From the NCBI GenBank assembly GCA_002269645.1, contig NIVC01001187.1:1-64000 (forward strand): a DNA stretch of 64,000 bases, given 5' to 3'. This stretch comes from Macrostomum lignano. Its lineage: Eukaryota. The translations under genes were made by a program, and so were the position numbers. Of the stretch, positions 700-64,000 are shown in pieces; within the stretch, counting starts at the first letter, position 1; each line of letters starts with the position of its first letter. The notes beneath the pieces were generated by a model, which searched no databases, was not told the DNA's origin, and worked only from the letters and a program-made list of their open reading frames with translations.

Positions 700-1856
700 T
701 AATTTGAATTCATGCCGTCTGATCCTATAGACAGCTACCGGTAAATAATTTAGAAAAATGGCCACGTATCTCCTACTTGATACATAGAGTCAGACGCGTC
801 TATTACCAAATTTCACTGGATGTCTCTGTGGAAGTAGTCAAGCCTTCTTTAAACATAGCTTTTTGTTTATCTCTGTTAAAGCTTGAATACGTGGGGACTG
901 GAATACAATCCACACAGGTTGAAGCGTGCAACCAGAGCTGCAAGCCGTCTACTTATTTCGACTTTGGGAACACTGCCTCGAGAAGGGTATCTCTGTTTTG
1001 AAAGGCGAGCTCAAATTGTGGAAGTCTGGCATACGAATAAGCAGTTTTGCGTTGATGAAACAGCTGCAGGCAAACCCAATGATGACTTAAAGAGTCGTCC
1101 TTGGGCAAACCATGCATGAACATTGAACAGGTACATGAAAACTGAAAGACGCTTAAATCGTGACAATGTCGCGAGACTGCAAGTTGGCGAGACTGCAATT
1201 GGCGAGACTGCAAGTTTTCAGTTTTTTACTAAATTCCCAACATCTCACTGCCTAGCCGCACTTCCGAAGTCCAAATCAAGCAAGTGTGTGAATCGTTTCG
1301 ATTGAGGTGAACTCAAAAGTTAGTTGAAAGTTTGAAAAAGCAAGATTATTCGAGAACTGCAACGCTCAAACTACAGATGTGCTTTCTAAACGGATTTTGC
1401 TAAGATTTGTCTTTTGCATTGCGCTGAATGGGGGGTTCGCCATAGACATTGTTTGTCGAGAAATCTGTCTAATTGCCGGTCTCCGGAAGCATTTCCGGCA
1501 AAGGGTCCTAAAGCGTCCGGTAAAGCGTGACAAATTACTAAGAAGATTGAAGCAGAGCAAGCAACTCGCCAAAATACGAGTACAAATCTGGAACGGCAGG
1601 TGAAAAAAGTTTGAAGTATAACGAGCACGTTAGCTGCTGCTTACGGGCGTATTTTCCGCTAAACCGGTCAAACAAGACTCCCAGACGTGAACAAAGCAGG
1701 TTTTCCATTGAGGGAAATTCCATTCCAGCAGAGACGCTTCTTTTAAAGTTAATTTGCAAACCTTTGGCCGAAGTGGAATTGGGTTTCGGAAAAGCTTTTA
1801 GAAAGCTGTCACGTGCAGTAAACCAGTGTGGTCAACGTGCCGCGAGCTAAGCAGAC

Positions 1857-1863
1857 TATTTAA
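1857..1863 (+). promoter_or_regulatory. TATA-like box upstream of the secreted repeat-protein gene
   Basis: TATTTAA lies ~90 nt upstream of the ATG at 1952. Confidence 0.3.
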
Positions 1864-1951
1864 CCCTGACGACCAAGTAGAGTATTGGCATGGTTAGAGC
1901 TGCATCTTTTTCTATTTGCTTCTAGCTAGGATTCAAAAGAACTGCTTAGTA

Positions 1952-3307
1952 ATGGCGAAGAGACTAAGGCTGTATCTTCTAGTCCTTTGTCTGACTGCTG
2001 TAGCCTGCGGAACGGATCAAGCCTTCGGATATCCAGCCAGCAGTGAAGGAAAAGAATGGAGCATTCACGGAAGCAGCAGCGGTGGAGGCGGCAAGGAGTG
2101 GAGCAGTCACGGAAGCAGCAGCGGTGGAGGAGGAAAGGAGTGGAGCAGTCACGGAAGCAGCAGCAGTGGAGGCGGCAAGGAGTGGAGCCGTCACGGAAAC
2201 AGCAGCAGTGGAGGAGGAAAGGAGTGGAGCAGTCACGGAAGCAGCAGCGGTGGAGGCGGCAAGGAGTGGAGCAGTCACGGAAGCAGCAGCGGTGGAGGCG
2301 GTAAGGAGTGGAGCAGTCACGGAAGCAGCAGCGGTGGAGGCGGCAAGGAGTGGAGCAGTCACGGAAGCAGCAGCGGTGGAGGCGGCAAGGAGTGGAGCAG
2401 TCACGGAAGCAGCAGCGGTGGAGGCGGCAAGGAGTGGAGCCGTCACGGAAACAGCAGCAGTGGAGGAGGAAAGGAGTGGAGCAGTCACGGAAGCAGCAGC
2501 GGTGGAGGCGGCAAGGAGTGGAGCAGTCACGGAAGCAGCAGCGGTGGAGGCGGTAAGGAGTGGAGCAGTCACGGAAGCAGCAGCGGTGGAGGCGGCAAGG
2601 AGTGGAGCAGTCACGGAAGCAGCAGCGGTGGAGGCGGCAAGGAGTGGAGCAGTCACGGAAGCAGCAGCGGTGGAGGCGGCAAGGAGTGGAGCCGTCACGG
2701 AAGCAGCAGCGGTGGAGGCGGCAAGGAGTGGAGCAATCACGGAAACAGCAGCAGTGGAGGCGGCAAGGAGTGGAGCAATCACGGAAGCAGCAGCAGGGGA
2801 GGCGGCAAGGAGTGGAGCAGTCACGGAAGCAGCAGCAGGGGAGGCGGCAAGGAGTGGAGCAGTCACGGAAGCAGCAGCGGTGGAGGCGGCAAGGAGTGGA
2901 GCAGTCACGGAAGCAGCAGCGGTGGAGGCGGCAAGGAGTGGAGCAGTCACGGAAGCAGCAGCGGTGGAGGCGGCAAGGAGTGGAGCAGTCACGGAAGCAG
3001 CAGCGGTGGAGGCGGCAAGGAGTGGAGCCGTCACGGAAGCAGCAGCGGTGGAGGCGGCAAGGAGTGGAGCAATCACGGAAACAGCAGCAGTGGAGGCGGC
3101 AAGGAGTGGAGCAATCACGGAAACAGCAGCAGTGGAGGCGGCAAGGAGTGGAGCAGTCACGGAAGCAGCAGCAGTGGAGGCGGCAAGGAGTGGAGCAGTC
3201 ACGGAAGCAGCAGCGGTGGAGGCGGCAAGGAGTGGAGCAGTCACGGAAGCAGCAGCGGTGGAGGCGGCAAGGAGTGGAGCAAAGGTGGTTCCTGCGGTAT
3301 CTGCTGA
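1952..3307 (+). CDS. Intronless secreted Gly/Ser/His/Trp-rich tandem-repeat protein, 451 aa: signal peptide + 29 full 14-aa units (30 KEWS motifs) + C-terminal CGIC
   Basis: ATG at 1952 starts MAKRLRLYLLVLCLTAVACG (basic n-region, hydrophobic core, small-residue cleavage site). The unit is 42 bp with no indels. Variants GGC>GGA/GGT are synonymous in this frame but not in the other open plus frame. AATAAA at 3417. Confidence 0.85.
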   Translation: MAKRLRLYLLVLCLTAVACGTDQAFGYPASSEGKEWSIHGSSSGGGGKEWSSHGSSSGGGGKEWSSHGSSSSGGGKEWSRHGNSSSGGGKEWSSHGSSSGGGGKEWSSHGSSSGGGGKEWSSHGSSSGGGGKEWSSHGSSSGGGGKEWSSHGSSSGGGGKEWSRHGNSSSGGGKEWSSHGSSSGGGGKEWSSHGSSSGGGGKEWSSHGSSSGGGGKEWSSHGSSSGGGGKEWSSHGSSSGGGGKEWSRHGSSSGGGGKEWSNHGNSSSGGGKEWSNHGSSSRGGGKEWSSHGSSSRGGGKEWSSHGSSSGGGGKEWSSHGSSSGGGGKEWSSHGSSSGGGGKEWSSHGSSSGGGGKEWSRHGSSSGGGGKEWSNHGNSSSGGGKEWSNHGNSSSGGGKEWSSHGSSSSGGGKEWSSHGSSSGGGGKEWSSHGSSSGGGGKEWSKGGSCGIC

Positions 3308-3416
3308 TCTCTGATCCGTGGTGTCAGTTTTCCTTTGTCTTGTGCTTTTACTGCAGATTTAGACTACATTATTAATGTTAACAAATTTTAAGGTGAGCAC
3401 TGCTCATAACTTTAAC

Positions 3417-3422
3417 AATAAA
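3417..3422 (+). terminator. Polyadenylation signal AATAAA of the repeat-protein gene
   Basis: Canonical hexamer 110 nt after the stop, followed by a T-rich stretch. Confidence 0.5.
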
Positions 3423-3953
3423 CTTGGAATCGGTTATTTCGCATCAATTTTCGTTTTCGTAAAGTTCGTATTCTTTTTTTCGGCAAGTTAATTTCTGCCC
3501 AGCACTGGAAGTGGCTCATGCTTCCTGCAGATTTCTTTCTGTCAGCAATGCCTGCTACCTGCAGTATGATTAGGGCCCGTTATCTCTGCTGTGAAATTGC
3601 GAGTTGCCTCCTTTATTAAGCGGCAAGCAGGCAGTCCGAGGATATACAATTCGCTAAGCAAACAGCACTCAAAAAGTCTATTGTACTGCTCATGCACAGC
3701 TCATGTACGCGCTACGATGGTTGGACTGAGCTGTGCTCACAGGGAGAAGTGTTTACAGGGAGCTTTGATGCGCTGAGCCAATGAGAAAGCAAATGGCAGT
3801 TTTGGAGAGGAGAGACTTTATAGACCCCTGCACCGGCGCGCTGCTCACAAATGCTCTGAGCGCACTGAAACCTGCATAAGCCAACGACTCATATTTTGGA
3901 ATTCGGTCTCAAGTTTTAGCTGCCTAATAGCGCTGCGGCTGAAGAGGCTCCGG

Positions 3954-5432
3954 ATGAGAGTGGTCGATGAGGCGTCTGGCTGTGCGCTGCTGCCGCTGCT
4001 CATTCTGGCATCGATGGCCCTTCTCTGCCGTGAGTACGGAACCCTCATGGCCAATATACAGAGCTGCATGTTGCCGCTTTAATTCACCTGGATGAGGACT
4101 CGTTTTCATGATGCTCGCTGTGAAACAGTGCCTGCTATTCTAGACGTGGCTTCTCTCTTCCATCAAACTTCACACCGCCTCATCATCAGCCTCTCTGAAA
4201 TTCTGATGGGCTGATGAGGCTGAGCAGCTGAATTGCGGCAAGCTAAGTTTCAAAACAACTGCTCAAGCCTGTAGAGCAGTGCAAACACAGCTGCGGTTTT
4301 ATAGCGGGCGAATTAATTATTCAGGAATCGCCCACCTTCATACAACGGGCCATCCTCTGTCACGTGACAATGCGACCAAACCCCAGCCTCTGCTCAGCCA
4401 GGTATCCCCTTTAGCCATGTTTCTCGTTTCCTACTTTTCAACCTCTCTCCGGCCGAGCCCCCAGAAGCATTTCTACCCCTGTCTGCTTCAAGAACAGCAG
4501 TGGAGAGTGAGCGGAGGTCTGGGACTGTTTGCCGGCCTGCACATGCATATCTCGCGCTCTCCTCGCTGAATATTTATGCCTCCAGATGGGCAGACTGCTG
4601 ACGGCCTGACTTGCTACAAGTGCAGCAACTCCCGCGACCTCAGCGTCTGCCTTTCGCGCACTGAGACCTGCTCCGGCAGCGAGTCCTGCTACAAGGCAGA
4701 GACAGCCGGCTCAATGACAGGGGTGGTTGAGAAATATTCCATGGTGAGGATGCGATCAAATTTTGTGAAATCAACTCGCATCCCCGACTGCTTCTTGCTT
4801 CACTTGATCACTCCACCTACATGCAGTACCTGATCTCTCCATCACCTACAGTACCTGATAACTCCTCCACCTGTATACAATACCTGATCACTTCTCCACC
4901 TGATCACTCCTCCACCTGATCACTCCTCCACCTGATCACTCCTCCACCTGATCACTCCTCCACCTGATCACTCCTCAACCTGATCACTCCTCCACCTGAT
5001 CACTCCTCTACCTGATCACTCCTCCACCTGATCACTCCTCCACCTGATCACTCCTCCACCTGATCACTCCTCCACCTGATCACTCCTCCACCTGATCACT
5101 CCTCCGCCTACATACAGTACCTGATCACTCCTCCATCTATATACAATCCCTGAGCACTTCCTCACCTACCTGGTCACTCCAACAGCAGCACCATTATCTG
5201 TCTCAATCTCATTCGCCAAACTATGCAATCTCAGGGCTGCATGGACACCACCACGTGCGCCCGCCAGCCGCAGTCGACCGCTTGCGACCTCTGCGATAAC
5301 GCCGGGCAGACCTGCTACAGCTGCTGCCGGGACCGCAGCTATTGCAACAGCGGCACCAGGCCGGCGATCGACCTTCGCCAGGTGGTCGTCGCTCTGGCCA
5401 TCGCCTGCTGCCTGCCTGGACTCCGCGCCTGA
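3954..5432 (+). CDS. Ly6/uPAR (three-finger) GPI-anchored protein, 143 aa; exons 3954-4029, 4586-4743, 5235-5432
   Basis: Hydrophobic signal exon (LLPLLILASMALLC); LTCYKC start; CC-RDRSY-CN signature; hydrophobic C-terminal tail (VVVALAIACCL). GT-AG junctions are phase-compatible (1, 0). Confidence 0.85.
4883..5106. repeat. Intronic 16-bp minisatellite (cctgatcactcctcca)n in Ly6 intron 2
   Basis: Direct tandem copies seen. Confidence 0.95.
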
Positions 5433-11300: not shown

Positions 11301-14300
11301 CGCATCAACTGGCTGGCCAGCTCCAGCAGGAAGATCTTCGGCACCATCGTGGAGAGGAACATGCTCTTCCTGCTGGACATGTCGGCGGCCAACGTGAACT
11401 ACCTGGTGCACATCCAGCACTCCATGCGGATGCTGATGGAGCAGCAGATGTCGAACAAAGACTACTTCAACTTGGTTGCGTTCGGTAGTGAGGTTCGCTT
11501 CTTCAGCAAAACCATGGTCAAGGTCAGCGAGGCCTCGCTGCAGGCCGGCTGGAAGTGGATTCTGGGACTCGAGTGCGCCGGCTCACGCAACCTGCTGGGC
11601 GCCCTGCGGAAGGTGCTGGAGAACGAGGAGGAGGAGAAGCACCGCGTGTACCCGGAGGGCCTGTACCTGTTCACCTCGGGCATTCCGGACCAGGGCGCCG
11701 AGCAGGTGAGTTTCGGATTAGGATATTCGAGCCTGATTGCCGCTGAGGATCTGGGGCTGCAGTGACTGATAGCTGGCTGGGGTGTCAGGCACCGGGCTGA
11801 GGTGTTTTGGAGCTGGCTGGGGTGTCAGTCAGGCACCGGGTTGGTGTGTTTTGGAGCTGGCTGGGTGTCAGTCAGGCACCGGGCTGGGGTGTTTTGGAGC
11901 TGGCTGGGGTGCCAGGCACTGGGCTGACTGGTGTGTTTTGGAAGTGCGCTTGGCAGTCCGCTACTTCTCCTCCACTCCACGCAACAAACTATTCCAGGTG
12001 AGCGCCTACCTCGAGGAGAAGGCCGTCGGCCGGGACCTGCGGCTGCACTGCGTGCTGTTCAACGTGGATGACTACGACAAGGACGGCGCCATCCCCGGCA
12101 GGTACGCCAGCATCACCAAGACCGCCGACTCGCTGCGCTTCCTGGCGCACTGCACCGGCGGCCGGTTCCACTGGTTCCGCGAGACCGGCATCATCGAGTC
12201 CGACGACATCCGGCTGATCATGTCGGAGATCGACAAGGCCGTGAATTTCTCGCGCCGGGCGAAGACGCTCATCGATGCCGTCCGCTCCAAGTACGAGGAG
12301 ATGTTCCCCGACAAATACCCCAAGGCCCTTGGCGGGGGCAGCGGCCCGGAGTCCGGTGGCGACGACGATCCCGATGGCGGCAGCGGAGGCGACGGCGGCG
12401 GAGGCGGGGGAGGCGGCGCCAAGCCGAAGGCGCTGCCTCCACCGAAGCCGACGGCGAAAAGCCTGGCCCGACAGTCGTTCGTGCGCGACGCGCTGGACTC
12501 TGAGCCGCCGGTGCCGAAGGCGCTCGGCCTGCGGCCGGGTGCCGCCAGTTCCGTCAAGGCGGAGCCGCTCGAGAGCGTCCGCCTGAACCGGCGCTGCGTG
12601 AAGTCGGCCTTCTACACGGGCGAGCGGAACCGCAAGGGCCAGGTGATCTCCGACTACCAGGGCGGCAAGTCCGTCCGCAAGGCGGTGGGCCGGGCGGAGA
12701 TCCCGGACAAGGAGGACCAGGTGACGTCCAAGGCCTGGTTCAAGCGGTACAGCCTGGCCAAGCTGGGCCTGGACCTGTACCGCCTGGTCTCCGGGCCGGA
12801 CTGCCGGCACGAGGAGAAGCTGGTGAAGCCGCTGGGCAAGACGGTGTCGGCCAAGTACTGCAGCGGCCTGTTCCCCACGGTGAACGTGAGAGGCGTCACC
12901 AAGCACCTGCAGTACACGCCCGTGGAGCTGCAGTCCTACGATGCGGAATGCGTCCGTGCGCTGAAGCGCTACCTGCAGCGGTTGCACTGGCTGCTGTCAG
13001 GCAGCCGGCGGCTCTTCGGCGTCGTGGTGGAGACCCGGGCGGTCTTCCTTGTCGACGTCTCTGGCTCGATGGCGCCGTACATGGAGGAGCTGAAGCTGGC
13101 GCTCAAGGCGCTGGTCTGGGAGCAGCTGTACAAGTTTCGGGTGGCCTTCAATCTCATCGCCTTCAGCAGCGGCCTGCGCGCCTGGAGCCCCGGCCTGGAG
13201 CCCGCCGAGGAGGACAGCTGCCACGCCGCTGTGGCCTGGATTGACCGGCTGGAGTCCATGGGCAACACGGCCACGCTTGAGGCGCTAGAGGCCGCCTTCG
13301 CCACCAAGTGAGCGGCCATTAGCCAGTGCCCCACCTGACTCAGCCAGTGTCCCACCTGACTCAGCCAGTGCCCCACCTGACTCAGCCAGTGTCCCACCTG
13401 ACTCAGCCAGTGTCCCACCTGACTAAGCCAGTGCCCCACCTGACTCAGCCAGTGCCCCACCTGACTCAGCCAGTGCCCCACCTGACTCAGCCAGTGCCCC
13501 ACCTGACTCAGCCAGTGCCCCACCTGACTCAGCCAGTTCCTCACCTGTATCATCAGCCAGTTCCACCTGTATCATCAGCCAGTTCCTCACCTGTATCATC
13601 AGCCAGTTCCTCACCTGTATCATCAGCCAGTTCCTCACCTGTATCATCAGCCAGTTCCTCACCTGTATCAGCCAGTTCCTCACCTGTATCATCAGCCAGT
13701 TCCTCACCTGTATTATCAGCCAGTTCCTCACCTGTATCATCAGCCAGTTCTTCAGCTGTATCATCAGCCAGTTCCTCACCTGTATCAGCCAGTTTCTCAA
13801 CTGTATCATCAGCCAATTCCTCACCTGTATCAGCCAGTTCCTCACCTGTATCAGCCAGTTCCTCACCTGTATCATCAGCCAATTCCTCACCTGTATCAGC
13901 CAGTTTCTCAACTGTATCATCAGCCAGTTCCTCAACTGTATCATCAGCCAATTCCTCACCTGTATCAGCCAATTCCTCACCTGTATCAGCCAGTTCCTCA
14001 ACTGTATCATCAGCCAATTCCTCACCTGTATCAGCCAGTTCCTCACCTGTATCAGCCAGTTCCTCACCTGTATCAGCCAGTTCCTCACCTGTATCATCAG
14101 CCAGTTCCTCACCTGTATCAGCCAGTTCCTCACCTGTATCAGCCAGTTTCTCACTGTATCATCAGCCAGTTCCTCACCTGTATCAGCCAGTTCCTCACCT
14201 GTATCATCAGCCAGTTCCTCACCTGTATCAGCCAGTTCCTCACCTGTATCAGCCAGTTTCTCAACTGTATCATCAGCCAGTTCCTCACCTGTATCAGCCA

Positions 14301-14848
14301 GTTCCTCACCTGTATCATCAGCCAGTTCCTCACCTGTATCAGCCAATTCCTCACCGCTCATATCAAATATGCCATAAAAATGCAACCACAACCGAATCTG
14401 CTCCAGGGAGCCGGTGGACGCGATCTACCTGCTGACGGACGGCAAACCGGACACCTCCACCAGCACCATCCTGCGCAGCATCAACCGCCTGGACGCAGGC
14501 AGAAACATCGCCATACACACCATCAGCTTCAACTGCTGCGACGCCACCGCCAACAACTTCCTGCAGTGCCTGGCCTCGGAGACCGGCGGCCGCTACCACA
14601 AGGTTGTGGAGGAATTCGACGCCAAGCTGTTCGCCCACCGGCTGCTGGAGGAGTCGCAGCTGGACGACCCAGAGTACCCCAACCTGCCCGCATTCGAGGG
14701 CGACGACCTGAGCCGGCTGGCCAAGGAGATCGACTCGGCCAGGCGCTTCCTAGCGAAGTCCAAGTACTTCAAGGACCTCTACTACGAGACCAAGCGGCTG
14801 CGCACGGAGAACCTGGGCGCCCGGGAGAACCGGATGGTGCCCGCCTGA
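8313..14848 (+). CDS. VWA3A: von Willebrand factor A domain-containing protein 3A-like, ~1304 aa; exons 8313-8343, 8996-9288, 9368-10045, 10545-11705, 11998-13307, 14407-14848
   Basis: Repeated VWA3-type modules (SRKLFGLVQGERVAVCVDCS, SRKIFGTIVERNMLFLLDMS, SRRLFGVVVETRAVFLVDVSGSM; DAIYLLTDGKPD; IHTISFNC). All junctions are GT-AG and phase-compatible, total 3915 nt. 3A versus 3B is by resemblance only. Confidence 0.8.
10190..10340. repeat. Intronic 22-bp minisatellite (cttagtgcctgtctggatgtgt)n
   Basis: About 6 tandem copies in VWA3A intron 3. Confidence 0.9.
11770..11945. repeat. Degenerate ~40-bp tandem repeat in VWA3A intron 4
   Basis: Repeated ggggtgtcag(tcag)gcaccgggctggggtgttttggagctggct. 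Confidence 0.75.
13320..14350. repeat. Compound 21/24-bp minisatellite filling VWA3A intron 5
   Basis: (cagccagtgccccacctgact)n switches at ~13535 to (cagccagttcctcacctgtat[cat])n. Confidence 0.95.
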
Positions 14849-15932: not shown

Positions 15933-18900
15933 CTACGCCGCGCTGAGGGCACTGAGCCGCTCATTCTTGGCGGCCTCGGCCCTGAAGTCCTTCACCAGCT
16001 TGTTATACCGCCGCTCGCTCTCCACCAGCCGCAGGTACTCAGAGTTCAGGCCGTCCCGCTTGGCCTTCTCCGTGGTCAGCCGCCGCTCTGCTTGGCTCTG
16101 GTTCTGCCTGGCGCTCTCCACGATCTTCTCCAGCTGGCCGGCCAGCTCCTGCCTGCCTGCCGGTGACCGCTCCGTCTGCCTGTAGTTGTCCTCCACCGAT
16201 GTCAGCAGTTGGATCTCGCGCTCCAGCAGTTCGCGAAGCGAGCAGGCAGAGTTGTACAGGCAGTAGAACTGCTTGGTCTGACGGTGCAGTGTGGCCGCCT
16301 GCTCAGCCAGCTCAAGCAGCCGCCGCATGTACTGGCTGGCCTCCTCCTGGGGGATTGGTCATGATGAGATTAGTCATGATGAGATTGGTAATGATGAGAT
16401 TGGTCATGATGAGATTGGTCATGATGAGATTGGTAATGATGAGATTGTTCATGATGAGATTGGTCATGATGAGATTGGTAATGATGAGATTGGTCATGAT
16501 GAGATTGGTCATGATAAGATTGGTCATGATGAGATTTGTCATGGGGGATTTGGTCATGATGAGATTGGTCATGATGAGATTGGTAATGATGAGATTGGTC
16601 ATGATTAGATTAGTCATAAGATTGGTCATGATGAGATTAGTCATGATGAGATTGGTCATGGGGAATTTGGTCATGGGGAATTTGGTCATGATGAGATTGG
16701 TCATAGAAGATTTGGTCATGATGAGATTGGTCATGATGAGATTAGTTATGGGGAGATTGTTTATAGGGATTGTTCACGAGATTGGTCATATGGATCGTTC
16801 ATGGGGAGATTGATCATGGAGATCGGGTCATGTTGGTCATGGGGAATTGGTCATTGGAGACTGATAATACACCTCACCTGGCTGGGGAACTCATCAATTC
16901 TGCGGCGCAGCGAGGCGCAGGCGCGGCTCGCCTCGGCCAGCTGGGCGCGGGCCGCCGCCAGCCGCTCGGCCGCCGCAGCCGCCTGCTCGGTTGCCTTGGC
17001 AACGCGCTCGCTGTTCGCCGCCTCGGCTTCAACGTCGCCGGCAGCGGCCGCCCGGTCCCGCAGCCTGGCCAGCTCAGCCTCCAGCTCGGCCGCCTCGGCC
17101 CGAAGCGTCGCCTTCTGCTCGGCCTCGCGCTGCCGCAGCTCCTCGGCTGCCGCCACCAGGCGGTCAAGGCGGGCCGCGGCACGCGGGTCCTGCGCCACCG
17201 CGCCGAGCGCCGATAGTTGCGCCGCGAAATCGGCGCGCTGCTGCTCGGCCGCGGCAACTCGAGCGACTTCGACATCTCGGCGTTCGCGAGCTGCCCGCTC
17301 TCGCTCTGCCGCCTGCTCCGCCTGCTGCCTGCGGGGAGGACAGCGTCAGTGCTGTGTGAGCAGTGATGGAGTCTCACAGGCTGTGTGAGCAGTGATGGAG
17401 TCTCAGGCTGTGTGAGCAGTGATGGAGTCTCACAGGCTGTGTGAGCAGTGATGGAGTCTCACAGGCTGTGTGAGCAGTGATGGAGTCTCACAGGCTGTGT
17501 GAGCAGTGATGGAGTCTCACAGGCTGTGTGAGCAGTGATGGAGTCTCAGGCTGTGTGAGCAGTGATGGAGTCTCAGGCTGTGTGAGCAGTGATGGAGTCT
17601 CAGGCTGTGTAAGCAGTGATGGAGTCTCATGCTGTGTGAGCAGTGATGGAGTCTTACAGGCTGTGTGAGCACTGATGGAGTCTCATAGACGGCTCACCTC
17701 GCGGTTTCCAGCCGCTCCTCCATGCCATCGCGCACCCGCTGCTGCTGCTCGGGGCTCAGCTGCCGAAGGCTCTCCATCTGCTGTGCCAGCTCCGTCTGCT
17801 TGACCCCGAAGTCCAGCAGGGCTCGTTGAATGTCGGCCGACTGCAGGCCGACGATGGTGCCGACGAGGCTGGCCGCCAGCCGCTTTTGCTGCCCGGCTTC
17901 GCCCATCTCGGCGAGCTCCGAGGCGGCACCGCTACCGGCTCCACCAGCACCTGTGGCGCCAGCAGCACCAGTTCCTGCACCGGTGACCCCTGTGCCGAGT
18001 CCGCCATTGTACTCTAGCAAAGTAGTTCGCACCTGGCCGACAAGTTTGAGGATCTCTTGATAGCGGAATCCCATGCCATTTCTGACACCTGGGCTCAGAG
18101 TGCCATTTCTGTAATCTGTCACCTGGCTTCAGAGTGCCATTTCTGACACCTGACTTCAGAGTGCCATTTCTGACACCTGGGCTCAGAGTGCCATTTCTGA
18201 CACCTGGGCTCAGAGTGCCATTTCTGACACCTGGGCTCAGAGTGCCATTTCTGACACCTGGGCTCAGAGTGCCATTTCTGACACCTGGGCTCAGAGTGCC
18301 ATTTCTGACACCTGGGCTCAGAGTGCCATTTCTGACACCTGGGCTCAGAGTGGCATTTCTGACACCTGGGCTCAGAGTGCCATTTCTGACACCTGGGCTC
18401 AGAGTGCCATTTCTGACACCTGGGCTCAGAGTGGCATTTCTGACACCTGGGCTCAGAGTGCCATTTCTGACACCTGGGCTCAGAGTGGCATTTCTGACAC
18501 CTGGGCTCAGAGTGGCATTTCTGACACCTGGGCTCAGAGTGCCATTTCTGACACCTGGGCTCAGAGTGCCATTTCTGACACCTGGGCTCAGAGTGGCATT
18601 TCTGACACCTGGGCTCAGAGTGCCATTTCTGACACCTGGGCTCAGAGTGCCATTTCTGACACCTGGGCTCAGAGTGCCATTTCTGACACCTGGGCTCAGA
18701 GTGCCATTTCTGACACCTGGGCTCAGAGTGGCATTTCTGACACCTGGGCTCAGAGTGCCATTTCTGACACCTGGGCTCAGAGTGCCATTTCTGACACCTG
18801 GGCTCAGAGTGGCATTTCTGACACCTGGGCTCAGAGTGCCATTTCTGACACCTGGGCTCAGAGTGCCATTTCTGACACCTGGGCTCAGAGTGGCATTTCT

Positions 18901-20027
18901 GACACCTGGGCTCAGAGTGCCATTTCTGACACCTGGGCTCAGAGTGCCATTTCTGACACCTGGGCTCAGAGTGGCATTTCTGACACCTGGGCTCAGAGTG
19001 GCATTTCTGACACCTGGGCTCAGAGTGCCATTTCTGACACCTGGGCTCAGAGTGCCATTTCTGACACCTGGGCTCAGAGTGCCATTTCTGACACCTGGGC
19101 TCAGAGTGGCATTTCTGACACCTGGGCTCAGAGTGCCATTTCTGACACCTGGGCTCAGAGTGCCATTTCTGACACCTGGGCTCAGAGTGGCATTTCTGAC
19201 ACCTGGGCTCAGAGTGCCATTTCTGACACCTGGGCTCAGAGTGGCATTTCTGACACCTGGGCTCAGAGTGCCATTTCTGACACCTGGGCTCAGAGTGGCA
19301 TTTCTGACACCTGGGCTCAGAGTGGCATTTCTGACACCTGGGCTCAGAGTGCCATTTCTGACACCTGGGCTCAGAGTGGCATTTCTGACACCTGGGCTCA
19401 GAGTGCCGCATCCCCAGCCCAGAAGATGCTCACCTGCGTCTCCTCCGGCACCTGCGCGCCCCGATACGCGGCCGGCTTGCGCAGCCGCCGCTGAGTTGGA
19501 AACGCCGCCTTCAGCTGCGCCCGCCGATCCGCGAGCGCCGCCGCGGCCGCAGCCAGCTCGGGCTGACTGGCGGGCTGGTGAGCAGCGCTGGGCTGCAGCA
19601 GGCGGTACTGCTCAACAGCGAACTGGCGCCAGTCGGCAGTCATCTGGTCCCGCCTGCCGATCACCTGGGTGACCAGCCACTGCACCACGGGGAACACGTG
19701 GACGAAGTCGCGGCCCTGGATCTGGTGCGGCTCGATGGCGTGCGGACAGCGCATCCTGCGGAGGGCTCGCACGATTTTCTCTGTGAGGGCGATCTTCTGC
19801 CCGATGCTGGAGCCCTCGTGGAACAGCAGGTCGGCGTCAATGTCAACGCTGCAGCCCTGCACGCACCAGCAGAGGCCGCCTACCAGCTTGTCGAAGGCGG
19901 AGAGGCCACGGATTCTGGCACGGAAGTAGCCAGCAGAGACCAGCAGCTGAAGGCACTCGGCCTCCTTGGCCTCCTGGTCCTCATCCTTGCGGATGTCATA
20001 CTCGCCCTCTCTGTAGCGATGGGCCAT
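15933..20027 (-). CDS. CCDC93: Coiled-coil domain-containing protein 93 (Commander/CCC complex), ~597 aa; exons 20027-19434, 18032-17698, 17328-16878, 16346-15933
   Basis: N-terminal LQLLVSAGYFRARIRGLSAFDKLVGGLCWC and IEPHQIQGRDFVHVFPVVQWLV; C-terminal TKQFYCLYN...EREIQLLTS...YNKLVKDF match the recalled CCDC93 family sequence. Phases 0/2/0 are consistent, total 1794 nt. Confidence 0.93.
16352..16860. repeat. Intronic 15-bp minisatellite (gagattggtcatgat)n
   Basis: Fills CCDC93 intron 3 and degenerates toward the donor end. Confidence 0.95.
17350..17690. repeat. Intronic 27/29-bp minisatellite (gctgtgtgagcagtgatggagtctc[ac]ag)n
   Basis: Fills CCDC93 intron 2 almost edge to edge. Confidence 0.95.
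18070..19407. repeat. Intronic 27-bp minisatellite (ctgacacctgggctcagagtg[c/g]cattt)n, ~48 copies
   Basis: Fills CCDC93 intron 1. The body of the array has essentially a single dimorphic position (C/G). Confidence 0.97.
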
Positions 20028-21103
20028 GCCTGGCTGCAAAGTTTAAACCAAAAAGTTGAATTAAACAAAATGAAACAATAAAGCATAATAATTTAAAATG
20101 AAATTGAAGTCATTCTATATATTTTTATGATCATGCCCCCCTAGCTATAACACTAAATATAAACTGTAATTATAATATGGTAATTTATTTTCATTTTTTG
20201 ATAGTCAGATTCATAGTCTAGTTCTTATATATATAGATATAGCTTCTCTATTTATACTAGCCATGCAACTTAGTTTTCACTTTAACATATTTTTTTACAT
20301 TTTAAAGCACAATGTAAATAAAAAATATCAACAGAAAAAGAGACTATTTATTGTATATAAACAAAATATCCATTTTAGAAAATAGATGGCTATCAATATA
20401 AATAAATAAATCATATAGTTTCCTCATAGCTATGAAAATGACAATGGGAAATTACATGACTGTATAGATTTGATAGAATATACTACTATAAATTTGGTTA
20501 AACAAATATAAAATTTTATATATAGTTCCTAAGCCAGGGTGGAATAGTAAAGCCTAGAAAAAAATGAATTTTGCCAGTTTTAAAGCTTTTGTAAAAGGAT
20601 AAATTCAATGCCATATGTATATCATTTAGTTATAGTCTATATTTGGTATTTGGGTAAGAAGTACATACCCTAGAAATTTATAGGAATAGTCAAGAAATTT
20701 GGAATATATGTTGCTGTACAAAAAGTGATTTAGGGTTTTTAACATAAAATTTTAATATTTTGGTACATGATACATACTAAAAATAAAAAATTACATTAAT
20801 CAATAATAAATATAATATTTTTCCATGACAATATAACCCTAAAATTTGATGTTTCATTAGGCCTAATGCCAAACTGACCTCTACAATTTTAAAAGGTAGG
20901 GGTTTATTTTTGAAATTGCCTAACTTTTGAAATTTCACTTGGCTATATGATTTACTTTTTGACCAAAAATGCTATTTAACTTATGAAAAACCCCAAATAA
21001 AGCAAAAATTAATATAATTTTGGGTAAATGGCAAAAGTAGGCCTCGTAACTATATATAATTATATGATTAAGAATAAATGTCTTGTCATCTAATTAGGTA
21101 CTA

Positions 21104-21908
21104 CGAGGGGTGTTTCAAAATTAACGAGAATTTTGTAATAACTTTTGATTGGATGAATATATGAACCTGGAATTTTCACCTAACAATTTTACACATGAAC
21201 AACTAATAGCTTTATATTTTAAGCCTTATATAGCTGCACGCAACTGTGTAATCATAAATGAAAGATCATGCCTCAAAATTTTAAATTACAATTTTTGTCT
21301 ATGGCAAAAGACAAAAGTAACCAAGTTTGAATGTGTTCATCAAGTCAAAAATCCAGCACCATTTTTCATTTCTTCAGCAATTTCAGCAAGCTCTACAAAG
21401 CTGCCATTTATCTAGATACCCTTCTCGCAGCAATGCACCAGTTTTGTTAATTTCCTCCTCTAAAAAAACTTACAGATTTTTGGACCATCTATAGTCTCAG
21501 TTAGAAAAATTTGAGCCACTTTCACAGAATATTCTGTGGCCACATAAGTCAGAAATTGCAGCTTTAATCAGGAATGCTATGCAGCTCAAAACTGCAAGAT
21601 TATTCCCAAGCAACTTTGCCCATATAGAAAGCAGAAAGAGTGGGCCCTTGTGAGAAGTAGCCAAATTTAGCAGCAAAAGTTTAAAAGCCTTTAAATTTTA
21701 AACTTTTTGAGTCTTTTTGCCAGACAAAAATTGTAATCTTCAATATCGAGGCATGGACCTTCATATACAATTACATAATTGCATACAGCTATATAAGGCT
21801 TAAAATATAAAGCTATTAGTTGTTCATATTAGGTGAAAATTTCAAGTTCATATGTTTATCCAATCAAAAGTTATAACAAAATTCTTGTTACTTTTGAAAC
21901 ACCCCTTG
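21104..21908. mobile_element. Tc1/mariner-type MITE with ~200-bp imperfect TIRs and TA TSD
   Basis: TA|cgaggggtgtttcaaaattaacgagaatt... and ...aattcttgttacttttgaaacaccccttg|TA. The arms align over ~200 bp. No transposase ORF. Confidence 0.85.
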
Positions 21909-23149
21909 TACTATTTTCTAGGTTGGCATTTTTGCAGCTTAGTTGGACTTACCTTAGCTAGACTATTCACCATTAGCTTAATTGGCTGAAATTTGCTATA
22001 TTATAATATGGAAATTGATATAAACTCCTATAGTTAGCTAAGAATTATAAAATAGATTTATAAAACCAAGGAATAAAGCCAAACCATGCCATTTTTTATA
22101 TTTCTATTCATAGGAAATACAATTAGGCCCTATATAATATATTCAATATAAAATTAATAAGATTTTCTCCCTAGTTTTCTAACCAAAAAGCTTAAAAAAT
22201 ATTGACACAAGTTTTTAGGAATATCAATAGGGTACCACACACTCCAGATCATATGGTATACACACAAAAATTTGGGCATGCATTGACCTTGCATGCCAAA
22301 AGTAAGTGTGCAAAGTTGGCGTGTATCACTCCTAAAAAATAGTGTGCATGCATACCTAGCCTGCACTTCATAGAATCATGTGGAAGAGTTATTGTAAAGT
22401 ATAAAAAAGATGAAAATGGGTTCATTTTAAGCATAAATATCAAGCCTTCCAGGTTTTTAAGCCTGTAATAAAGCATTTAAACAAATCTGTATGTATTAAT
22501 TTTCCACTATAAATAGTACTATAGTAGGCCTAGTATCAAAAAATGAAAAATGACAAAAATGACAAAAAATGAACCAAATTATTTGCCAAAAAGGTTCATT
22601 ATGCAATTCAAAAAAGGTAATTTATGGTCACGTCATAATGTAAAAAAGTCATTTATTGTCACAACACTGGCATAGTTTTGAGAATAGGCATGTATTCAAT
22701 TTTTTGCATGCTATTTTTAATTAATAAATTTTTGTTTGGGTGTGCATCTAGCATGATTTGGACTATGGAAGATAGGCCTACCTAATAAAATGTAGAATCT
22801 GCAATAGGCCTAGAATTAGAATAGAATAGAATAGCATAAAAATGTAGAATCCATAGCGGAATGGTAAATTGTGGAATAAATTGTGGAATCTATTAACTTA
22901 GAGATAAAAATGCAAAATATTAGAATAAAAAATTGTAATTCTAAATACATAGGCCTATACTATAGTGTAGAAGGGCCTATGTTTATTCTAAGAAATTTAG
23001 TATCTTTTTTGCAAAATTAAATCTCTGCCAAAATAACAACTATCATATAATTTGTTTTAGTGTATGATTTTTTTTACCAAATAATTTTTGTTTTAATGAT
23101 GCAAATAATTTGTTTTAGTTTATTGATTGTTTTAATGCACAATACGTGA

Positions 23150-23840
23150 GCCAATAGGATGAGACGTTAACTACTATAAATACAAGGCAAAAATTATATT
23201 CTTTCTTTAACCTCGACCTTTCGGGTTCCTAACTCAGTTAACAGGAAATTAAGATTTCTTGGTTCTTCTGAATTAGTTATTTGAAGCAGTATTGCAAGTT
23301 AAATTACCGTGTTGGATAGAGTTGAGAGTGTCTTGTCAAAGCAGAGATTGCTAGTCAAGCGTGGTGCCCAGTAAAAGAGTGGAATACCCAATATAAAGGG
23401 TGAAATACCTAGTGTAAAGGTTGGATTACCCAGGAAGGGAGAATTTTCAGGCTGCTCCAGGTTAGCGTGATGCAGTTCTAAGTTGTGAGAGACAGTACTT
23501 AAAGAAGCTAGAAACCCCTCAGTCTGTGGTAAACGCCATGTCTGGACTGGACCATTTTAGGAATTTAGCAGTAGTTAGCAGTGTCTTGCTGCTTGGGCAC
23601 TGAAGCTACCAAGGGTAATTTGTAGGGACGATAGCCCATAATGTAAAAGTACATCTAAGTATAGAAATAGGATTCTTAGAAATAGCAAATTTAGCTAATT
23701 TAGTACAGTTTGACAATGATTAAACTTTAGAATTAAATAGAGAGAGCCAGTAGGCTTGCTACAACTTGGTGATTCAGTGGTGGAATTATAAGCTAGAAAG
23801 TAGAACCCCCCTGCGACAACTTGGTATCAGCTGTAGGATC
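23150..23840 (+). mobile_element. Possible LTR remnant with primer-binding-site-like junction
   Basis: CCAAT and TATAAA-like motifs at ~23150-23190; the region ends ...gcgACA-act-TGGTATCAGCTGTAGGAT (23822-23839), resembling a tRNA-complementary PBS. A similar gctACA-act-TGGTG motif occurs at ~23758. No 5-prime LTR boundary, TSD or gag/pol found. Confidence 0.35.
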
Positions 23841-24667
23841 CAATAGAAATAGAGAGAAGCACCTAGGCCTACAACAATAGCTATACCTATTTACTATATA
23901 GCAATGTGACCATGAAAAGGATGTATAAGGAAATTTTAGTATGATTTTATAGAGGCAAACTTAACTAAAAATAGTAGCATTTATTAGGCCTACTCAAAGT
24001 AGTAAGTATAGGTTCTTTCATGAATAATATGGCCAATAGGTGTTGAAAATATTTCCATAATTTTCTCTCTAGTAGGGGCCTACTAGCAGTTTGGTCAAAT
24101 TTTGAAGGCTTTATTGTTGTAAGATTATATATATAGTTCATAGTGCACTTCTGCTACCCTGCATATGCATTTTACTTAAATTTAGTAGAATCCATAGTTC
24201 ATTCCACTTAGTTCATTACGGTTATCATTCTACTGTGGATTCTGCACGAGGTTTGACCGCCGTTTCCTGGCTGTCTATTTGAATAGTCCTTGTTGGTGAT
24301 ACTATTCTTAAGTACAATTAAAGGAAACCAATGTGAATTCCACCTAAACAATTTACATTGCGGTTTTAGCATACTTCTTTACTGCGCATTCTAGCACCTA
24401 CCTTACATCGTCCACCGGTCGTAATAATGTTCCTAATCCCATATCCGAAACACTAATTTATAATTTCATATAAAAGTACTATTTAAAATTTAGCCTGACT
24501 CGCTTTTCCTGACTTTTTATCAAAAATATTCGTACATCAACATAAAATTTGCAAACTGCTCTCTTATAAGTACTTTCTCAAGTAAAAAAATTAAATAATA
24601 AATTAGCCAGTATTACTTTGCTATGTTGTATTGTACTTATTTTTCTAGAATTTTCCTTTTTCCGAAG

Positions 24668-24925
24668 GGGCCTTTTCATATTGCTTGTCTGGTTCCAGAA
24701 CCAGAACCAATTTGTGAAGTATAACTTTTTGTCTCCATAACTAGAGGGAGATACGTGCTAAAAGTTTTTATTATTGAACGAAAATCGCCAAGAAGAAAGT
24801 GAAAAATTGTGCCAAGTTAGGTTGTTAAGGCAGTCAAATATTAACAGAGTTTAATGGTTATACTGCTGTTTTTCTTGGAATTCCGAACCGATTCTGGTTC
24901 TGGAATTGGTAATATGAAAAGGCCC
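24668..24925. mobile_element. PIF/Harbinger-like MITE, 258 bp
   Basis: 15-bp perfect TIR GGGCCTTTTCATATT / AATATGAAAAGGCCC, an inner inverted ttccagaaccagaa, and a 3-bp direct flank AAG on both sides. Confidence 0.7.
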
Positions 24926-25723
24926 AAGGAATGGGGTTGGTGGGTGTGGAGTGGTCTTGGTTTATCATTTGCGTAATAGGTACACTAGGGAAACCACGTG
25001 GGTGACATAATTAACTTTTTATGTTTTCAAGCCTTTCAGACTTTTATGGAGTCGGCCTGGGTTAAGTTTTTCATTTTTTCAGATTTTTCAGTATTTTTCA
25101 ATATTTTTGTAGCTAATTAATGTAGGCCCTACTAAGGCACTATGTTGCAATTTTATCTTTAAATTCAATTAAAGTTCCACTAGTCTGCTATGATATGGCA
25201 ATAAGAAGCCATGGATATAAAGGTTTTTAGACAGATCATATAGATATAAATATGGTTAGGCCTAGGCCTATAAGAACAATTTTTATAGGCCTAAATACTA
25301 AAATACCTCACTAAGCTCTTATATCTAGATCACTCAATAACTTGAAGACTTAAGACATCAAATACCAATTACCATTGAAGCCATTGCTTTGATATGTAGG
25401 GGTAGATCAGTAAAAATGCTTTTGAAATATATGAATGTTTTAAATTTCAAAGCTTTTATAAGATTTTGTTAGCTAGGCCTAGCCTACCTAGGTCTATTGC
25501 TATATTTATTTGCCTTGTAGGTTGTAGGCTATAGCATAATAGATTAATGTAGCCCCCCTTATTTGAAATAGAAGAGCAGTTCCAATAAGCTCTTAAGTCC
25601 CCAAGAATAGGAACTCAAGCAATAAAGAATTTTCCATATCCATATTATAATAATTAGGGTAGGCCTAATAGGGCTAAAATTGAGATAAATATTTTCATTT
25701 TCAAATGCAAAGGAGCTCTTAAG

Positions 25724-26252
25724 TAGGGATTGCTGCAATATCCCAGATTTTTGTGATCCTGGGATTTAATCCCAGATTTGGCCAATCCTAGGATTGAATC
25801 CCGGGATCAGAATAATACAGATTTTTATGCTTCCAGGTTGAAATTTTAAGGCAAAATATGTGCTTATTGCTTTTTTGCTTACTTTTTTATTATTAGACTA
25901 TAGAGATAGGCCTAATGATCTATTTGTAAATGAAAAACAGCATTGTCTTGTGACCTATTAAAGTAAATAGTATAAATATACTAATTAGTAAAGAAGCAAA
26001 TCATATCAAAATTTAAATGGGAATTAATTTCATATTTGAATCTGTGATGTGGGGTTTAAAAAGGTGCCACATGACGTGAGGCAATTAATGGAAATTAGCA
26101 CAGTATAATAAACTAGTTGTGGGCCTAATTATGTTTATATTATAGCATTTTTTGTAAAAATATTAGCAAAAATTGTCCTGGGATTTAGAGTCCCAAATTT
26201 AGGCCCAATCCCAGGATTTCAGGATCCTGGGATCCTAGGATTGCAATCCCTA
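25724..26252. mobile_element. hAT-like MITE, 529 bp
   Basis: TIR TAGGGATTGC / GCAATCCCTA, subterminal (a)tccc(a/g)gga motifs at both ends, and an 8-bp TSD ctcttaag / ctctcaag (7 of 8 identical). Confidence 0.8.
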
Positions 26253-26731
26253 CTCTCAAGTCCATAGGATAAGGATCTAAACAGTAGAAATTTTGATAAT
26301 GCATGCACATTGGGATAGTAAGAGGCATAAATTAAGATAAATAATACCAATAAAGAGGCTGCCTAGTATTTACTACTACTAAAGAGGCTATATTGAAAAT
26401 AATTCAATGTTTTTGATGGGCCTATTCTATATTCTTAAGAACACATTTATAAGTAGACCATAACTCTTACAAAAGATCTTATTAAACATAGAAGATTTTG
26501 TTATTTTATTGGTTACTTAAACATAAAAAGAGAGGGCCAAAAGGAAAGAAAAAGAGAGAAGAAAAGCAAAAAAGAAAGGAGAAAAAGAAAAGAAAGAAAA
26601 GTGGTAAAAGAAAAGAAAAGAAAGACATAGAGAGAACTGAGAAAGGAAAGAAAGAAAAAAAAGAAAGAAAATATTGAAAAAGACAATCAAGTTAATGGGT
26701 ATTGAACATCAGATATGTTCTAAATTACCTA

Positions 26732-27695
26732 CAAGGGGTGTCCAAAAAGTAGTGATACTTTTAACCGTAGCTCTCATTCTATACCTTCCTGTGATTTAAA
26801 ATTTTATGAACTGATAGCGGAAAATCTCTTCTACAGACTGCTTTTTAAATTTTTAAAATTGATACTAGAGAACAAAAGTTATACCCACGAAAGTAACAGT
26901 ACCTATACCATAGAGTTACACAAATTATATCGAAATTTATAATAGTCGACTTCTGCACTCATTCATTAAGAAGGCATCGATAAATGTCTTGTTAAAGCAA
27001 TACCAAACCCCAATTGCAAAATGATACTCACTGTGACTGACTGAAATTTATCTATGGACGGGATCAGGTGCAGAAAAATAAAGCATTAAATAAAGCAAAC
27101 AGAGGAGCTTGCATTTTGCGATTCGTTTATGATTTCATTGCCCATACTCAACAACACACAAGGATGTGCACTCAGTTGTTGCTCAGCAAAGTACCATCTT
27201 CACTCTTTGGGGCGCTGGCCATGGTGCCTCAGAAATTCACGCAAAACTTTGCTCTGCGCACGGATCCTCTGCGGTCAGCAAAATGGCAGTTTATCGATGG
27301 ATGGAGCAGTTCAGCGAGGGAAGGACTGACTTGGCAGATCAGCATTGGATGGGGCGGCCATACGTTCATCGACCTGATGTACTAGCGGACTCCATTCTGG
27401 ATCTTCTTGACCATTAGAGAGATCGCTGACAGGTTGGACAAGACAAAATCAACAATTCATCGAAGCTTCCTCGGCATGGATCTCGTGAAGCTCAGCCTAT
27501 AATTTGTGTAACTCTGTGGTGCGGGTACTGCTGCTTTCGTGGGTGTAACTTTTGTTCTCTGGTATCAATTTTAAAAATTCAAAAAGCAGTCTGTAGAAGA
27601 GATTTTCCGCTATCAGTTCATAAAATTTTAAATCACAGGAAGGTATAGAATAAGAGCAACAGTTAAAAGTATCACTACTTTTTGGACACCCCTCG
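26732..27695 (+). mobile_element. Internally deleted mariner element with ~200-bp TIRs and a transposase N-terminal HTH remnant
   Basis: TA|caaggggtgtccaaaaagtagtgatac... and ...gtatcactactttttggacacccctcg|TA. The internal frame (~27160-27480) reads GHGASEIHAKLCSAHGSSAVSKMAVYRWMEQFSEGRTDLADQHWMGRP, typical of a mariner HTH ending in the GRP motif. It has a stop codon and no DDD domain. Confidence 0.88.
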
Positions 27696-28244
27696 TACAA
27701 AACACTTTTCAATGTTGCATTTTTGCAACTATAATAGCTAGCAGCAAGAGGTCCTAATGACCCATCTATGATATAACTTTCTTGTTATAGTTAGTGCACT
27801 ACTAGCCAGTGGCACTTGGCAAGAATAAGAAATAGAAAATTCACTAATTATAGATATAGATAGGCTACAGGAAAAATTTAAGATATGGCTACAGCTATGG
27901 ATATAGAAATAAATTTTAATATAATAGAACTTTAAATTTATAAAAGTATATTTGATGTCATTAGTTGTTGCTATTTCCAATAAAAATCAATCTGGCTTTT
28001 GTGGATAGGTTTATTATTTATAAAGTTTTCATTTTTGGACTTTAGAATTATAATGGCTATAAGAGTCTATTTTTGTCTTTTAAAATTATATTTATTCATT
28101 TATATGTGCCTGGAACTCTTGTTTTAGGATTTGTATTCATTTTATCCCACTATAGGTTTATTTAAATTATATGAGCTAAAATATAATTTTAAGCAATATT
28201 CTTTTGATATTACTATAAATAAGCTATATGGGTATTGTGTAGTT

Positions 28245-34220: not shown

Positions 34221-34398
34221 CCAGTTGATGTTAATAAAAATTTACAATGCAATTAACTACAAACCGGCCATGCAGTGGCCCAGCGAGCGCAAATCCTTGC
34301 TGTTTTTCGCAAGTGAACAGAAAACCGAGATAGCCTACCTAAATTAGTAGCAATACAGGCGTGCAATCTCCCACCGCCCCTCCGCGATTGCGATTCAG

Positions 34399-38306: not shown

Positions 38307-50920
<12,614 letters not shown>

Positions 50921-51298
50921 NNNNNNNNNNNNNNNNNNNNNNNNNNNNNNNNNNNNNNNNNNNNNNNNNNNNNNNNNNNNNNNNNNNNNNNNNNNNNNNN
51001 NNNNNNNNNNNNNNNNNNNNNNNNNNNNNNNNNNNNNNNNNNNNNNNNNNNNNNNNNNNNNNNNNNNNNNNNNNNNNNNNNNNNNNNNNNNNNNNNNNNN
51101 NNNNNNNNNNNNNNNNNNNNNNNNNNNNNNNNNNNNNNNNNNNNNNNNNNNNNNNNNNNNNNNNNNNNNNNNNNNNNNNNNNNNNNNNNNNNNNNNNNNN
51201 NNNNNNNNNNNNNNNNNNNNNNNNNNNNNNNNNNNNNNNNNNNNNNNNNNNNNNNNNNNNNNNNNNNNNNNNNNNNNNNNNNNNNNNNNNNNNNNNNN
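50921..51298. other. Assembly gap (378 N) at the centre of the inverted duplication
   Basis: Run of N. Confidence 1.

Positions 51299-64000
<12,702 letters not shown>

Follow-up and report, generated by a model that had tools for sequence, protein, structure and literature searches.

A candidate orphan gene for a repeat-built secreted protein in Macrostomum lignano

Does a long open reading frame (ORF) that runs through a tandem repeat encode a protein, or is it a minisatellite that happens to be open? This question is raised by positions 1952-3307 of a 64,000-nucleotide stretch of DNA from the flatworm Macrostomum lignano, which we analysed at its full length and call the window. The same genome yields many spurious long ORFs from intronic minisatellites, a trap for ORF-based calls, and separating such ORFs from repeat-built genes needs frame-specific tests, for instance a count of synonymous variants. 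The ORF at 1952-3307 is most likely an orphan, intron-less gene of M. lignano, of which there are at least three copies, either paralogous or allelic, that contain 22-29 repeat units. Its putative product would plausibly be a secreted protein made of repeats and without known relatives, of a familiar general type and of modest novelty, with an unusual Trp/His chemistry.

Anatomy of the ORF and search for relatives

We delimited the ORF from the ORF listing and the translation of the window, which place the ATG at 1952 and the TGA at 3305-3307 of the forward strand and yield a putative single-exon coding sequence of 451 codons plus stop (1952..3307). Signal peptides were called by a heuristic scan of ATG-started ORFs, and about 5 distinct sequences of the 479 ATG-started ORFs in the window (~1%) passed. 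The signal-peptide-like N-terminus of the ORF product (1952..2011; MAKRLRLYLLVLCLTAVACG) has a basic n-region (MAKRLR), a 12-residue hydrophobic core and A-x-G at -3/-1; it was parsed as MAKRLR / LYLLVLCLTAVA / CG, with predicted cleavage between ACG and TDQ, and the hydrophobicity of its h-region (2.9) was the highest among the signal-peptide-like matches. It is followed on the same strand by a unique 13-residue linker (2012..2050; TDQAFGYPASSEG), by 29 tandem units of 42 bp or 14 amino acids (aa) with the consensus KEWSSHGSSSGGGG (2051..3268), and by a truncated 30th unit that leads into the C-terminal tail KEWSKGGSCGIC and the stop codon (3269..3307).

Run on the array, Tandem Repeats Finder (TRF) reported a repeat at 2057-3281 with a period of 42, 29.2 copies, 96% matches, 0% indels and a score of 2219. 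Parsing of the translation gave 29 full 14-aa units at a constant spacing of 14 residues plus the truncated 30th, and a 20-nt unit probe matched 29 times, compared with 0 matches expected in shuffled sequences. At the DNA level we found 11 distinct units, with 14 units identical to each other, as well as higher-order duplications (units 4-9 equal units 10-15, and units 16-17 equal units 24-25); since such blocks are visible, the array evolves by unequal exchange.

The ORF product contains 142 Gly, 142 Ser, 32 Lys, 31 Glu, 30 Trp and 29 His residues. Each of the 29 units has one Trp, one His and a Lys-Glu pair, and Gly precedes Lys in every repeat, as GGGG-K in each unit. The Gly residues are encoded across units by the synonymous codons GGC, GGA and GGT. 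The units vary at three positions, with five variant units creating N-S-S sequons, and both Tyr residues of the product sit outside the repeats. The mature chain (431 aa, 41 kDa) would consist of 33% Gly, 33% Ser and ~7% each of Lys, Glu, Trp and His, with one Pro and one Thr, a single Gln in total and a computed grand average of hydropathy (GRAVY) of -1.32. It ends in ...GGSCGIC, where the Cys-Gly-Ile-Cys motif provides its only two Cys. The predicted tryptic or LysC peptide of the product is EWSSHGSSSGGGGK. A first-pass annotation, made from the letters and their ORFs, had already described the signal-peptide-like start, the 29 indel-free units and the GGSCGIC tail, together with the Trp, His and Lys/Glu of each unit, the lack of Tyr in the repeats, the G-K steps and the Gly codon variation; the anatomy is present at these positions and the compositional claims are all correct.

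To look for relatives, we searched the target protein against Pfam (0 matches), against PDB sequences (nothing below E=0.46) and, with the full-length query, against 5.8 billion proteins by a word-indexed search (no match at E<=1e-3). An exhaustive HMMER scan of 1.84 billion representative proteins returned 112 matches; the ten that were inspected, including those of highest identity, were unrelated repeat proteins with a 14-residue period. Two proteins (P0065 and P0066) are PLC-X-domain-like and unrelated to the target, and carry a C-terminal array of ETSSHEESQSAGGG, a Trp-free unit that has 9/14 positions and the 14-residue period in common with the target unit. Because these arrays share positions and period with the target they produce spurious E-values down to 1e-18, and the likeness looks like convergence of low-complexity repeats. 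Exact-sequence look-ups with all three genomic copies described below were empty, as was a scan of metagenome DNA with the coding sequence of the signal peptide. Peptide and DNA strings of the target had no match in literature full texts, nor in the supplements of positional RNA-seq, seminal-fluid and adhesion papers, of which the adhesion tables were partly covered; in the covered part of the adhesive footprint and pull-down mass-spectrometry tables, the target peptides were absent. The Pfam, PDB, word-indexed and HMMER searches thus gave no true relative, in agreement with the initial annotation, which had recognised no family, and judging by detectable homology the target most likely belongs to no described family and is a lineage-restricted orphan.

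Gene or minisatellite

The alternative to a gene is that the array is a minisatellite lying between a zinc-finger gene and a Ly6 gene and preceded by a chance ATG and hydrophobic stretch, which we consider unlikely. It draws its strength from the genomic background. TRF reported 54 rows for the window, with many arrays inside introns, and tandem repeats make up ~15% of the M. lignano genome (PMC5730564). Minisatellites occupy almost every intron or intergenic stretch of the window (for example 13317-14355, 16353-16759, 29740-31111 and 31754-34221), and in several arrays a period divisible by 3 results in ORFs, 200-500 aa long, that certainly do not represent genes. The clearest counterpart is a 27-bp array in a CCDC93 intron (18115-19407; 47.9 copies), which has 0% indels and two open frames, with ORFs of 430 and 512 aa. 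The 42-bp unit is itself free of stops in four of six frames, all open across the target array. The array is far beyond chance while the long open frame is not, and, because non-coding arrays are equally indel-free and open, an open frame alone proves nothing. The first-pass annotation had treated the ORF as self-evidently a gene; this was not borne out, as intronic arrays are just as open without coding and one of the three copies carries a frameshift.

What surrounds the array argues for a gene. A strong signal-peptide-like start, of the sort that passes the heuristic in ~1% of ATG-started ORFs, immediately precedes the array in the same frame and follows an in-frame stop (TAG at 1895). ATG 1952 is the first in-frame ATG after that stop, and its context has A at -3 as well as G at +4. 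A TATA-like box (TATTTAA; 1857..1863, +), 95 nt 5' of the ATG, forms a putative core promoter on the basis of its position, and an AATAAA poly(A) signal lies 112 nt 3' of the stop (3417..3422, +) and is followed by T-rich tracts. Each of the two motifs occurs once in 1701-4000 and is invariant in 3/3 genomic copies; the TATTTAA, the start context and the AATAAA all have the proper placement and are conserved. The array also lies outside the introns of the neighbouring genes. Between the TATA-like box and the main ATG we noted a 12-codon upstream ORF (ATGGTTAGAGCT...TAG) at 1890-1925 (+), whose position may be right at the transcription start or ahead of it. Another strong ATG start of signal-peptide type, at 38307 (+), precedes a 19-bp minisatellite and is probably exon 1 of a further gene for a secreted protein, for which the downstream vWD gene is a possibility.

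We then compared the genomic copies. Two public loci of assembly GCA_002269645.1 that contain the Ly6 gene, L001 (NIVC01001187.1) and L002 (NIVC01000365.1), also have the target ORF, each in the corresponding position, with 22 units and an intact frame in L001 and 28 units in L002, compared with 29 in the window. As the window is 2-3% different from both, it represents a third copy, in keeping with the redundancy described for the M. lignano genome (PMC5730564). The unique ends (the N-terminus with its signal peptide, which is unchanged in L001 and L002, the 13-residue linker and the C-terminal tail with the truncated unit) are identical in the three copies, and 5 substitutions fall within the 12 nt directly after the stop. 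Over the 79 units of the three copies we counted 13 distinct types of unit variant, 7 of which are synonymous in the target frame, an excess over the 18% expected (binomial P=0.004; P=0.015 when stratified by transition/transversion; small sample); in the other open frames 3/13 are synonymous. Lys, Glu, Trp and His are invariant in 79/79 units, and the edge unit, which escapes homogenisation, bears two synonymous changes. The variants show frame-specific purifying selection, in a small sample, and this restriction to the target frame counts against a non-coding minisatellite.

Several results weigh against the ORF being a gene or are neutral. The L002 copy has a 1-nt deletion in unit 5 that turns AGCCGTCAC into AGCGTCAC and breaks the frame; this may mean either that the copy has become a pseudogene or that the long-read assembly has an error inside the repeat. 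Codon usage does not discriminate in favour of the target frame, with log-odds relative to neighbouring genes of -0.24 in frame 0 and +0.61 in frame +2, and the codons of the unique N-terminus also score poorly relative to neighbouring genes (-12.3). The copies diverge by 0-4% (their flanks are 96-99% identical), and because they are so similar, comparing coding with non-coding divergence of the unique ends is uninformative. No transcript, expressed sequence tag, peptide or orthologue was matched in the sequence look-ups or in the literature and supplement strings. Finally, GenBank assembly GCA_002269645.1 has no gene call at the ORF, which is a weak point: the annotation of that assembly left out transcripts overlapping repeat annotations (PMC5730564), so a missing call says little. 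By the same exclusion, repeat-built secreted proteins become systematically invisible in the public annotation. With regard to the L002 deletion, the base is lost from a CC dinucleotide in unit 5 (8297-8338 of L002) and reading shifts into the RSGAVTEAAAVEAA frame; as this frame is open to a stop 7 nt past the normal one, the locus still shows a 451-aa ORF.

Taking the flanking signals and the synonymous excess together with these objections, we hold with good confidence that 1952-3307 is a real coding gene. Should it be expressed, the catalogue of secreted sticker-and-spacer material proteins, so far dominated by Tyr, 3,4-dihydroxyphenylalanine (DOPA) and His chemistries, gains a Trp/His variant; if it is not, the array is an ordinary minisatellite. 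M. lignano is well suited to such a study since transgenesis, RNA interference and in situ screens are routine in this species.

Candidate functions of the product

We modelled the product with AlphaFold2, which gave a mean predicted local distance difference test (pLDDT) score of 33.8 and a sole helix, located in the signal peptide. The net charge was computed as +38 at pH 5, +7 at pH 7 and +3.4 at pH 8.2. The favoured hypothesis of the first-pass annotation was a sticker-and-spacer structural or glue protein; the signal-peptide-like start, the disorder predicted by AlphaFold2, the drop in charge with pH and the two C-terminal Cys fit this type of protein, while the assignment to glands or matrix stays conjectural. 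We lean slightly towards a lineage-restricted, secreted, disordered sticker-and-spacer protein that is pH-switchable through its His residues.

Such a protein would be an extracellular or secretory-granule material in which the Gly/Ser stretches act as flexible spacers, and in which Trp (through cation-pi contacts with Lys) and Lys/Glu salt bridges would supply multivalent weak cross-links. In acidic granules the 29 His would make it a strong polycation (~+38 at pH 5) that would stay in solution or bind to polyanions; once released into sea water it would lose nearly all of its charge (~+3 at pH 8.2) and could then condense or gel. Through its terminal Cys pair it could form disulfide dimers or be anchored to a Cys-rich partner, and candidate tissues would be mucus, rhabdite, cement, shell or prostate glands. 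The more specific proposal of a Tyr-free, Trp/His-based, pH-switchable coacervating gland material, a polycation in granules that condenses in sea water, is distinctly unlikely; such a material might be a component of rhabdites, cement, shell or releasing glands, with a repeat number that evolves fast between copies. Speaking against condensation, the protein may stay in solution owing to its sticker density (one Trp per 14 residues) and its many Ser residues.

The same features have been weighed under three other functions. The product could be the core of a proteoglycan or O-glycan carrier, serglycin-like, with SGGG of each unit as the attachment site for up to 29 chains and with a function carried mainly by the glycans. 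SSSGGGG in each unit fits an SGxG-type attachment motif, and the unit resembles the glycosaminoglycan acceptor of bikunin (...GSGGGQK); the signal peptide, the disorder and the N-S-S sequons of the five variant units would also suit a glycosylated secreted core. Xylosylation sites usually have a flanking acidic cluster, however, which is missing here, where there is one Glu per unit, and the strict conservation of Trp and His would be left unexplained, so that we rate both the glycan core and a glycan-borne function as quite improbable. A multi-copy peptide precursor, which the first-pass annotation had raised as its second hypothesis and itself doubted, would release by Lys cleavage and Gly amidation ~29 copies of a EWSSHGSSSGGG-amide (or WSSHGSSSGGG-amide), to serve as neuropeptides or as secreted peptides in signalling or defence. 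In favour of such a precursor are the signal peptide, the large number of nearly identical copies and the Gly-Lys before each unit, with the C-terminal Gly as amide donor, and invertebrates have multi-copy precursors that are processed in unusual ways. Processing sites are usually dibasic, or monobasic with an upstream basic residue at P4, P6 or P8, whereas the target offers a lone Lys at P1 with Gly at P2-P5, Ser at P6-P8 and Glu at P1'. It is the lone Lys in this setting that disfavours the precursor and justifies the earlier doubt. The units moreover lack spacer peptides and vary at three positions, the genomic copies differ in unit number (22 to 29), the peptide expected from processing is rich in Gly/Ser and has no hydrophobic or aromatic C-terminal signature, and a CxxC tail is not a precursor feature; we consider both the precursor and a peptide role for its products highly improbable.

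An equally remote prospect is a Gly-rich antimicrobial or defence protein secreted onto the epidermis or into mucus. The target is secreted, Gly-rich and cationic below neutral pH, with recurrent His and Trp, and Gly/His/aromatic-rich peptides of arthropods and nematodes resemble it in composition only. Against this, it is far larger than such peptides, has no processing sites, is hydrophilic (GRAVY -1.32) with a net charge of only ~+3 in sea water, and showed no homology in our searches. Four further candidates were tried and rejected: the signal peptide is incompatible with the cytosolic location that an Argonaute-hook GW protein would have and that CAAX prenylation of CGIC would require, a glycosylphosphatidylinositol (GPI) anchor does not agree with the C-terminus, which is not hydrophobic, and Trp C-mannosylation lacks a WxxW/C motif. 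The secreted, disordered sticker-and-spacer protein remains the reading that we carry into the comparison with known systems.

Neighbouring genes and known systems

Genes identified in the window are Ly6/uPAR, VWA3-like, CCDC93, CACYBP and vWD/TIL mucin-like genes. The nearest to the target, 650 bp 3' of it, is a three-exon Ly6/uPAR (three-finger) gene (3954-4029, 4586-4743 and 5235-5432, +) that encodes a signal peptide of its own and a hydrophobic tail of the GPI type, with a GTGAGT donor after 3954-4029 and a polypyrimidine acceptor at 4585/4586. Its model is 99% identical to BOX15_Mlig033387g1 of Macrostomum lignano, which bears out the earlier guess that the DNA came from a flatworm. We asked whether the target signal peptide could be exon 1 of Ly6 with the array as an intron, and rejected this because Ly6 has its own signal-peptide exon (3954-4029); since in addition the public transcript model of Ly6 begins near 3864, past the target AATAAA, the target is neither an intron nor an exon of Ly6. 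In the public model at the L002 locus (BOX15_Mlig019315g1, 86 aa) the ATG is in a different frame and exon 2 is missing, so that this model is probably mis-annotated. The Ly6 copies also differ at a Cys that is expected and present in the window, where both public copies have Arg (STACD versus STARD).

At the other end of the window, a vWD/TIL mucin-like gene with near-identical 657-bp (219-aa) tandem repeats occurs at 41750-50920 (+) and again at 51299-64000 (-), as an inverted duplicate flanking a 378-N gap (50921-51298); the inverted duplication may be genuine or may have arisen as a palindromic artefact of the assembly. Its architecture recalls that of Mlig-ap2, which has a vWD/TIL N-terminus and 221-aa repeats (PMC6410801), and its repeat strings had no match in the supplements of the Mlig-ap2 paper (PMC6410801). 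An AT-rich block (20000-28000, GC 29-35%) lies between GC-rich gene bodies (GC up to 63%). Scans for bacterial promoters and terminators, Rfam families and tRNAs gave irrelevant or empty results.

Among adhesive materials, barnacle Gly/Ser-rich cement, sandcastle-worm cement and the GRK regions of Mlig-ap1 are like the target secreted, repetitive and dominated by Gly/Ser, with Lys, His or aromatic residues, and low-complexity repeats have already been described in M. lignano glue proteins (PMC8621496). The target differs from Mlig-ap1 and Mlig-ap2 in having no vWD, TIL, EGF or lectin domains, and it has neither Tyr/DOPA chemistry nor homology to these proteins. The features that define gel-forming mucins and adhesive proteins of the Mlig-ap type, namely vWD/C8/TIL or other Cys-rich domains for multimerisation and glycosylated Pro/Thr/Ser-rich repeats, were not found: the target has no Pfam domain, and its mature chain has one Pro, one Thr and two Cys.

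Compared with the minisatellites of M. lignano, the target shares the 96% unit identity, the lack of indels, the block duplications and the variable copy number (22/28/29), but stands outside introns, is flanked by a signal-peptide start and a poly(A) signal and shows a frame-specific synonymous excess. Glycine-loop proteins provide another comparison. Loricrin and the keratin end domains reside in the cytosol, lack a signal peptide and depend on transglutaminase for cross-linking via Gln and Lys. The target resembles them in its Gly/Ser runs, its single aromatics and its Cys available for cross-links, and is set apart by its signal-peptide-like start, its single Gln and its unrelatedness to the vertebrate proteins.

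In squid-beak His-rich proteins (HBP), deprotonation of His followed by clustering of aromatic residues (Tyr) leads to liquid-liquid phase separation near pH 6-7 (PMC6884462). The target is like squid HBP-1 and HBP-2 in being secreted, disordered and Gly-rich, with short tandem repeats and recurrent His and aromatic residues, and its computed charge collapse spans the pH range in which HBP phase-separate. It differs from the GHGxY pentarepeats of HBP in having Trp in place of Tyr, a 14-aa unit, a Lys/Glu pair and a terminal CxxC, and no homology was found between them. The two also come from different phyla, phase separation of the target is a prediction, and its sticker density is ~three times lower because its Ser/Gly spacers are much longer. 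By these resemblances, the squid HBP family, of which the target is not a member, is its closest working analogue.

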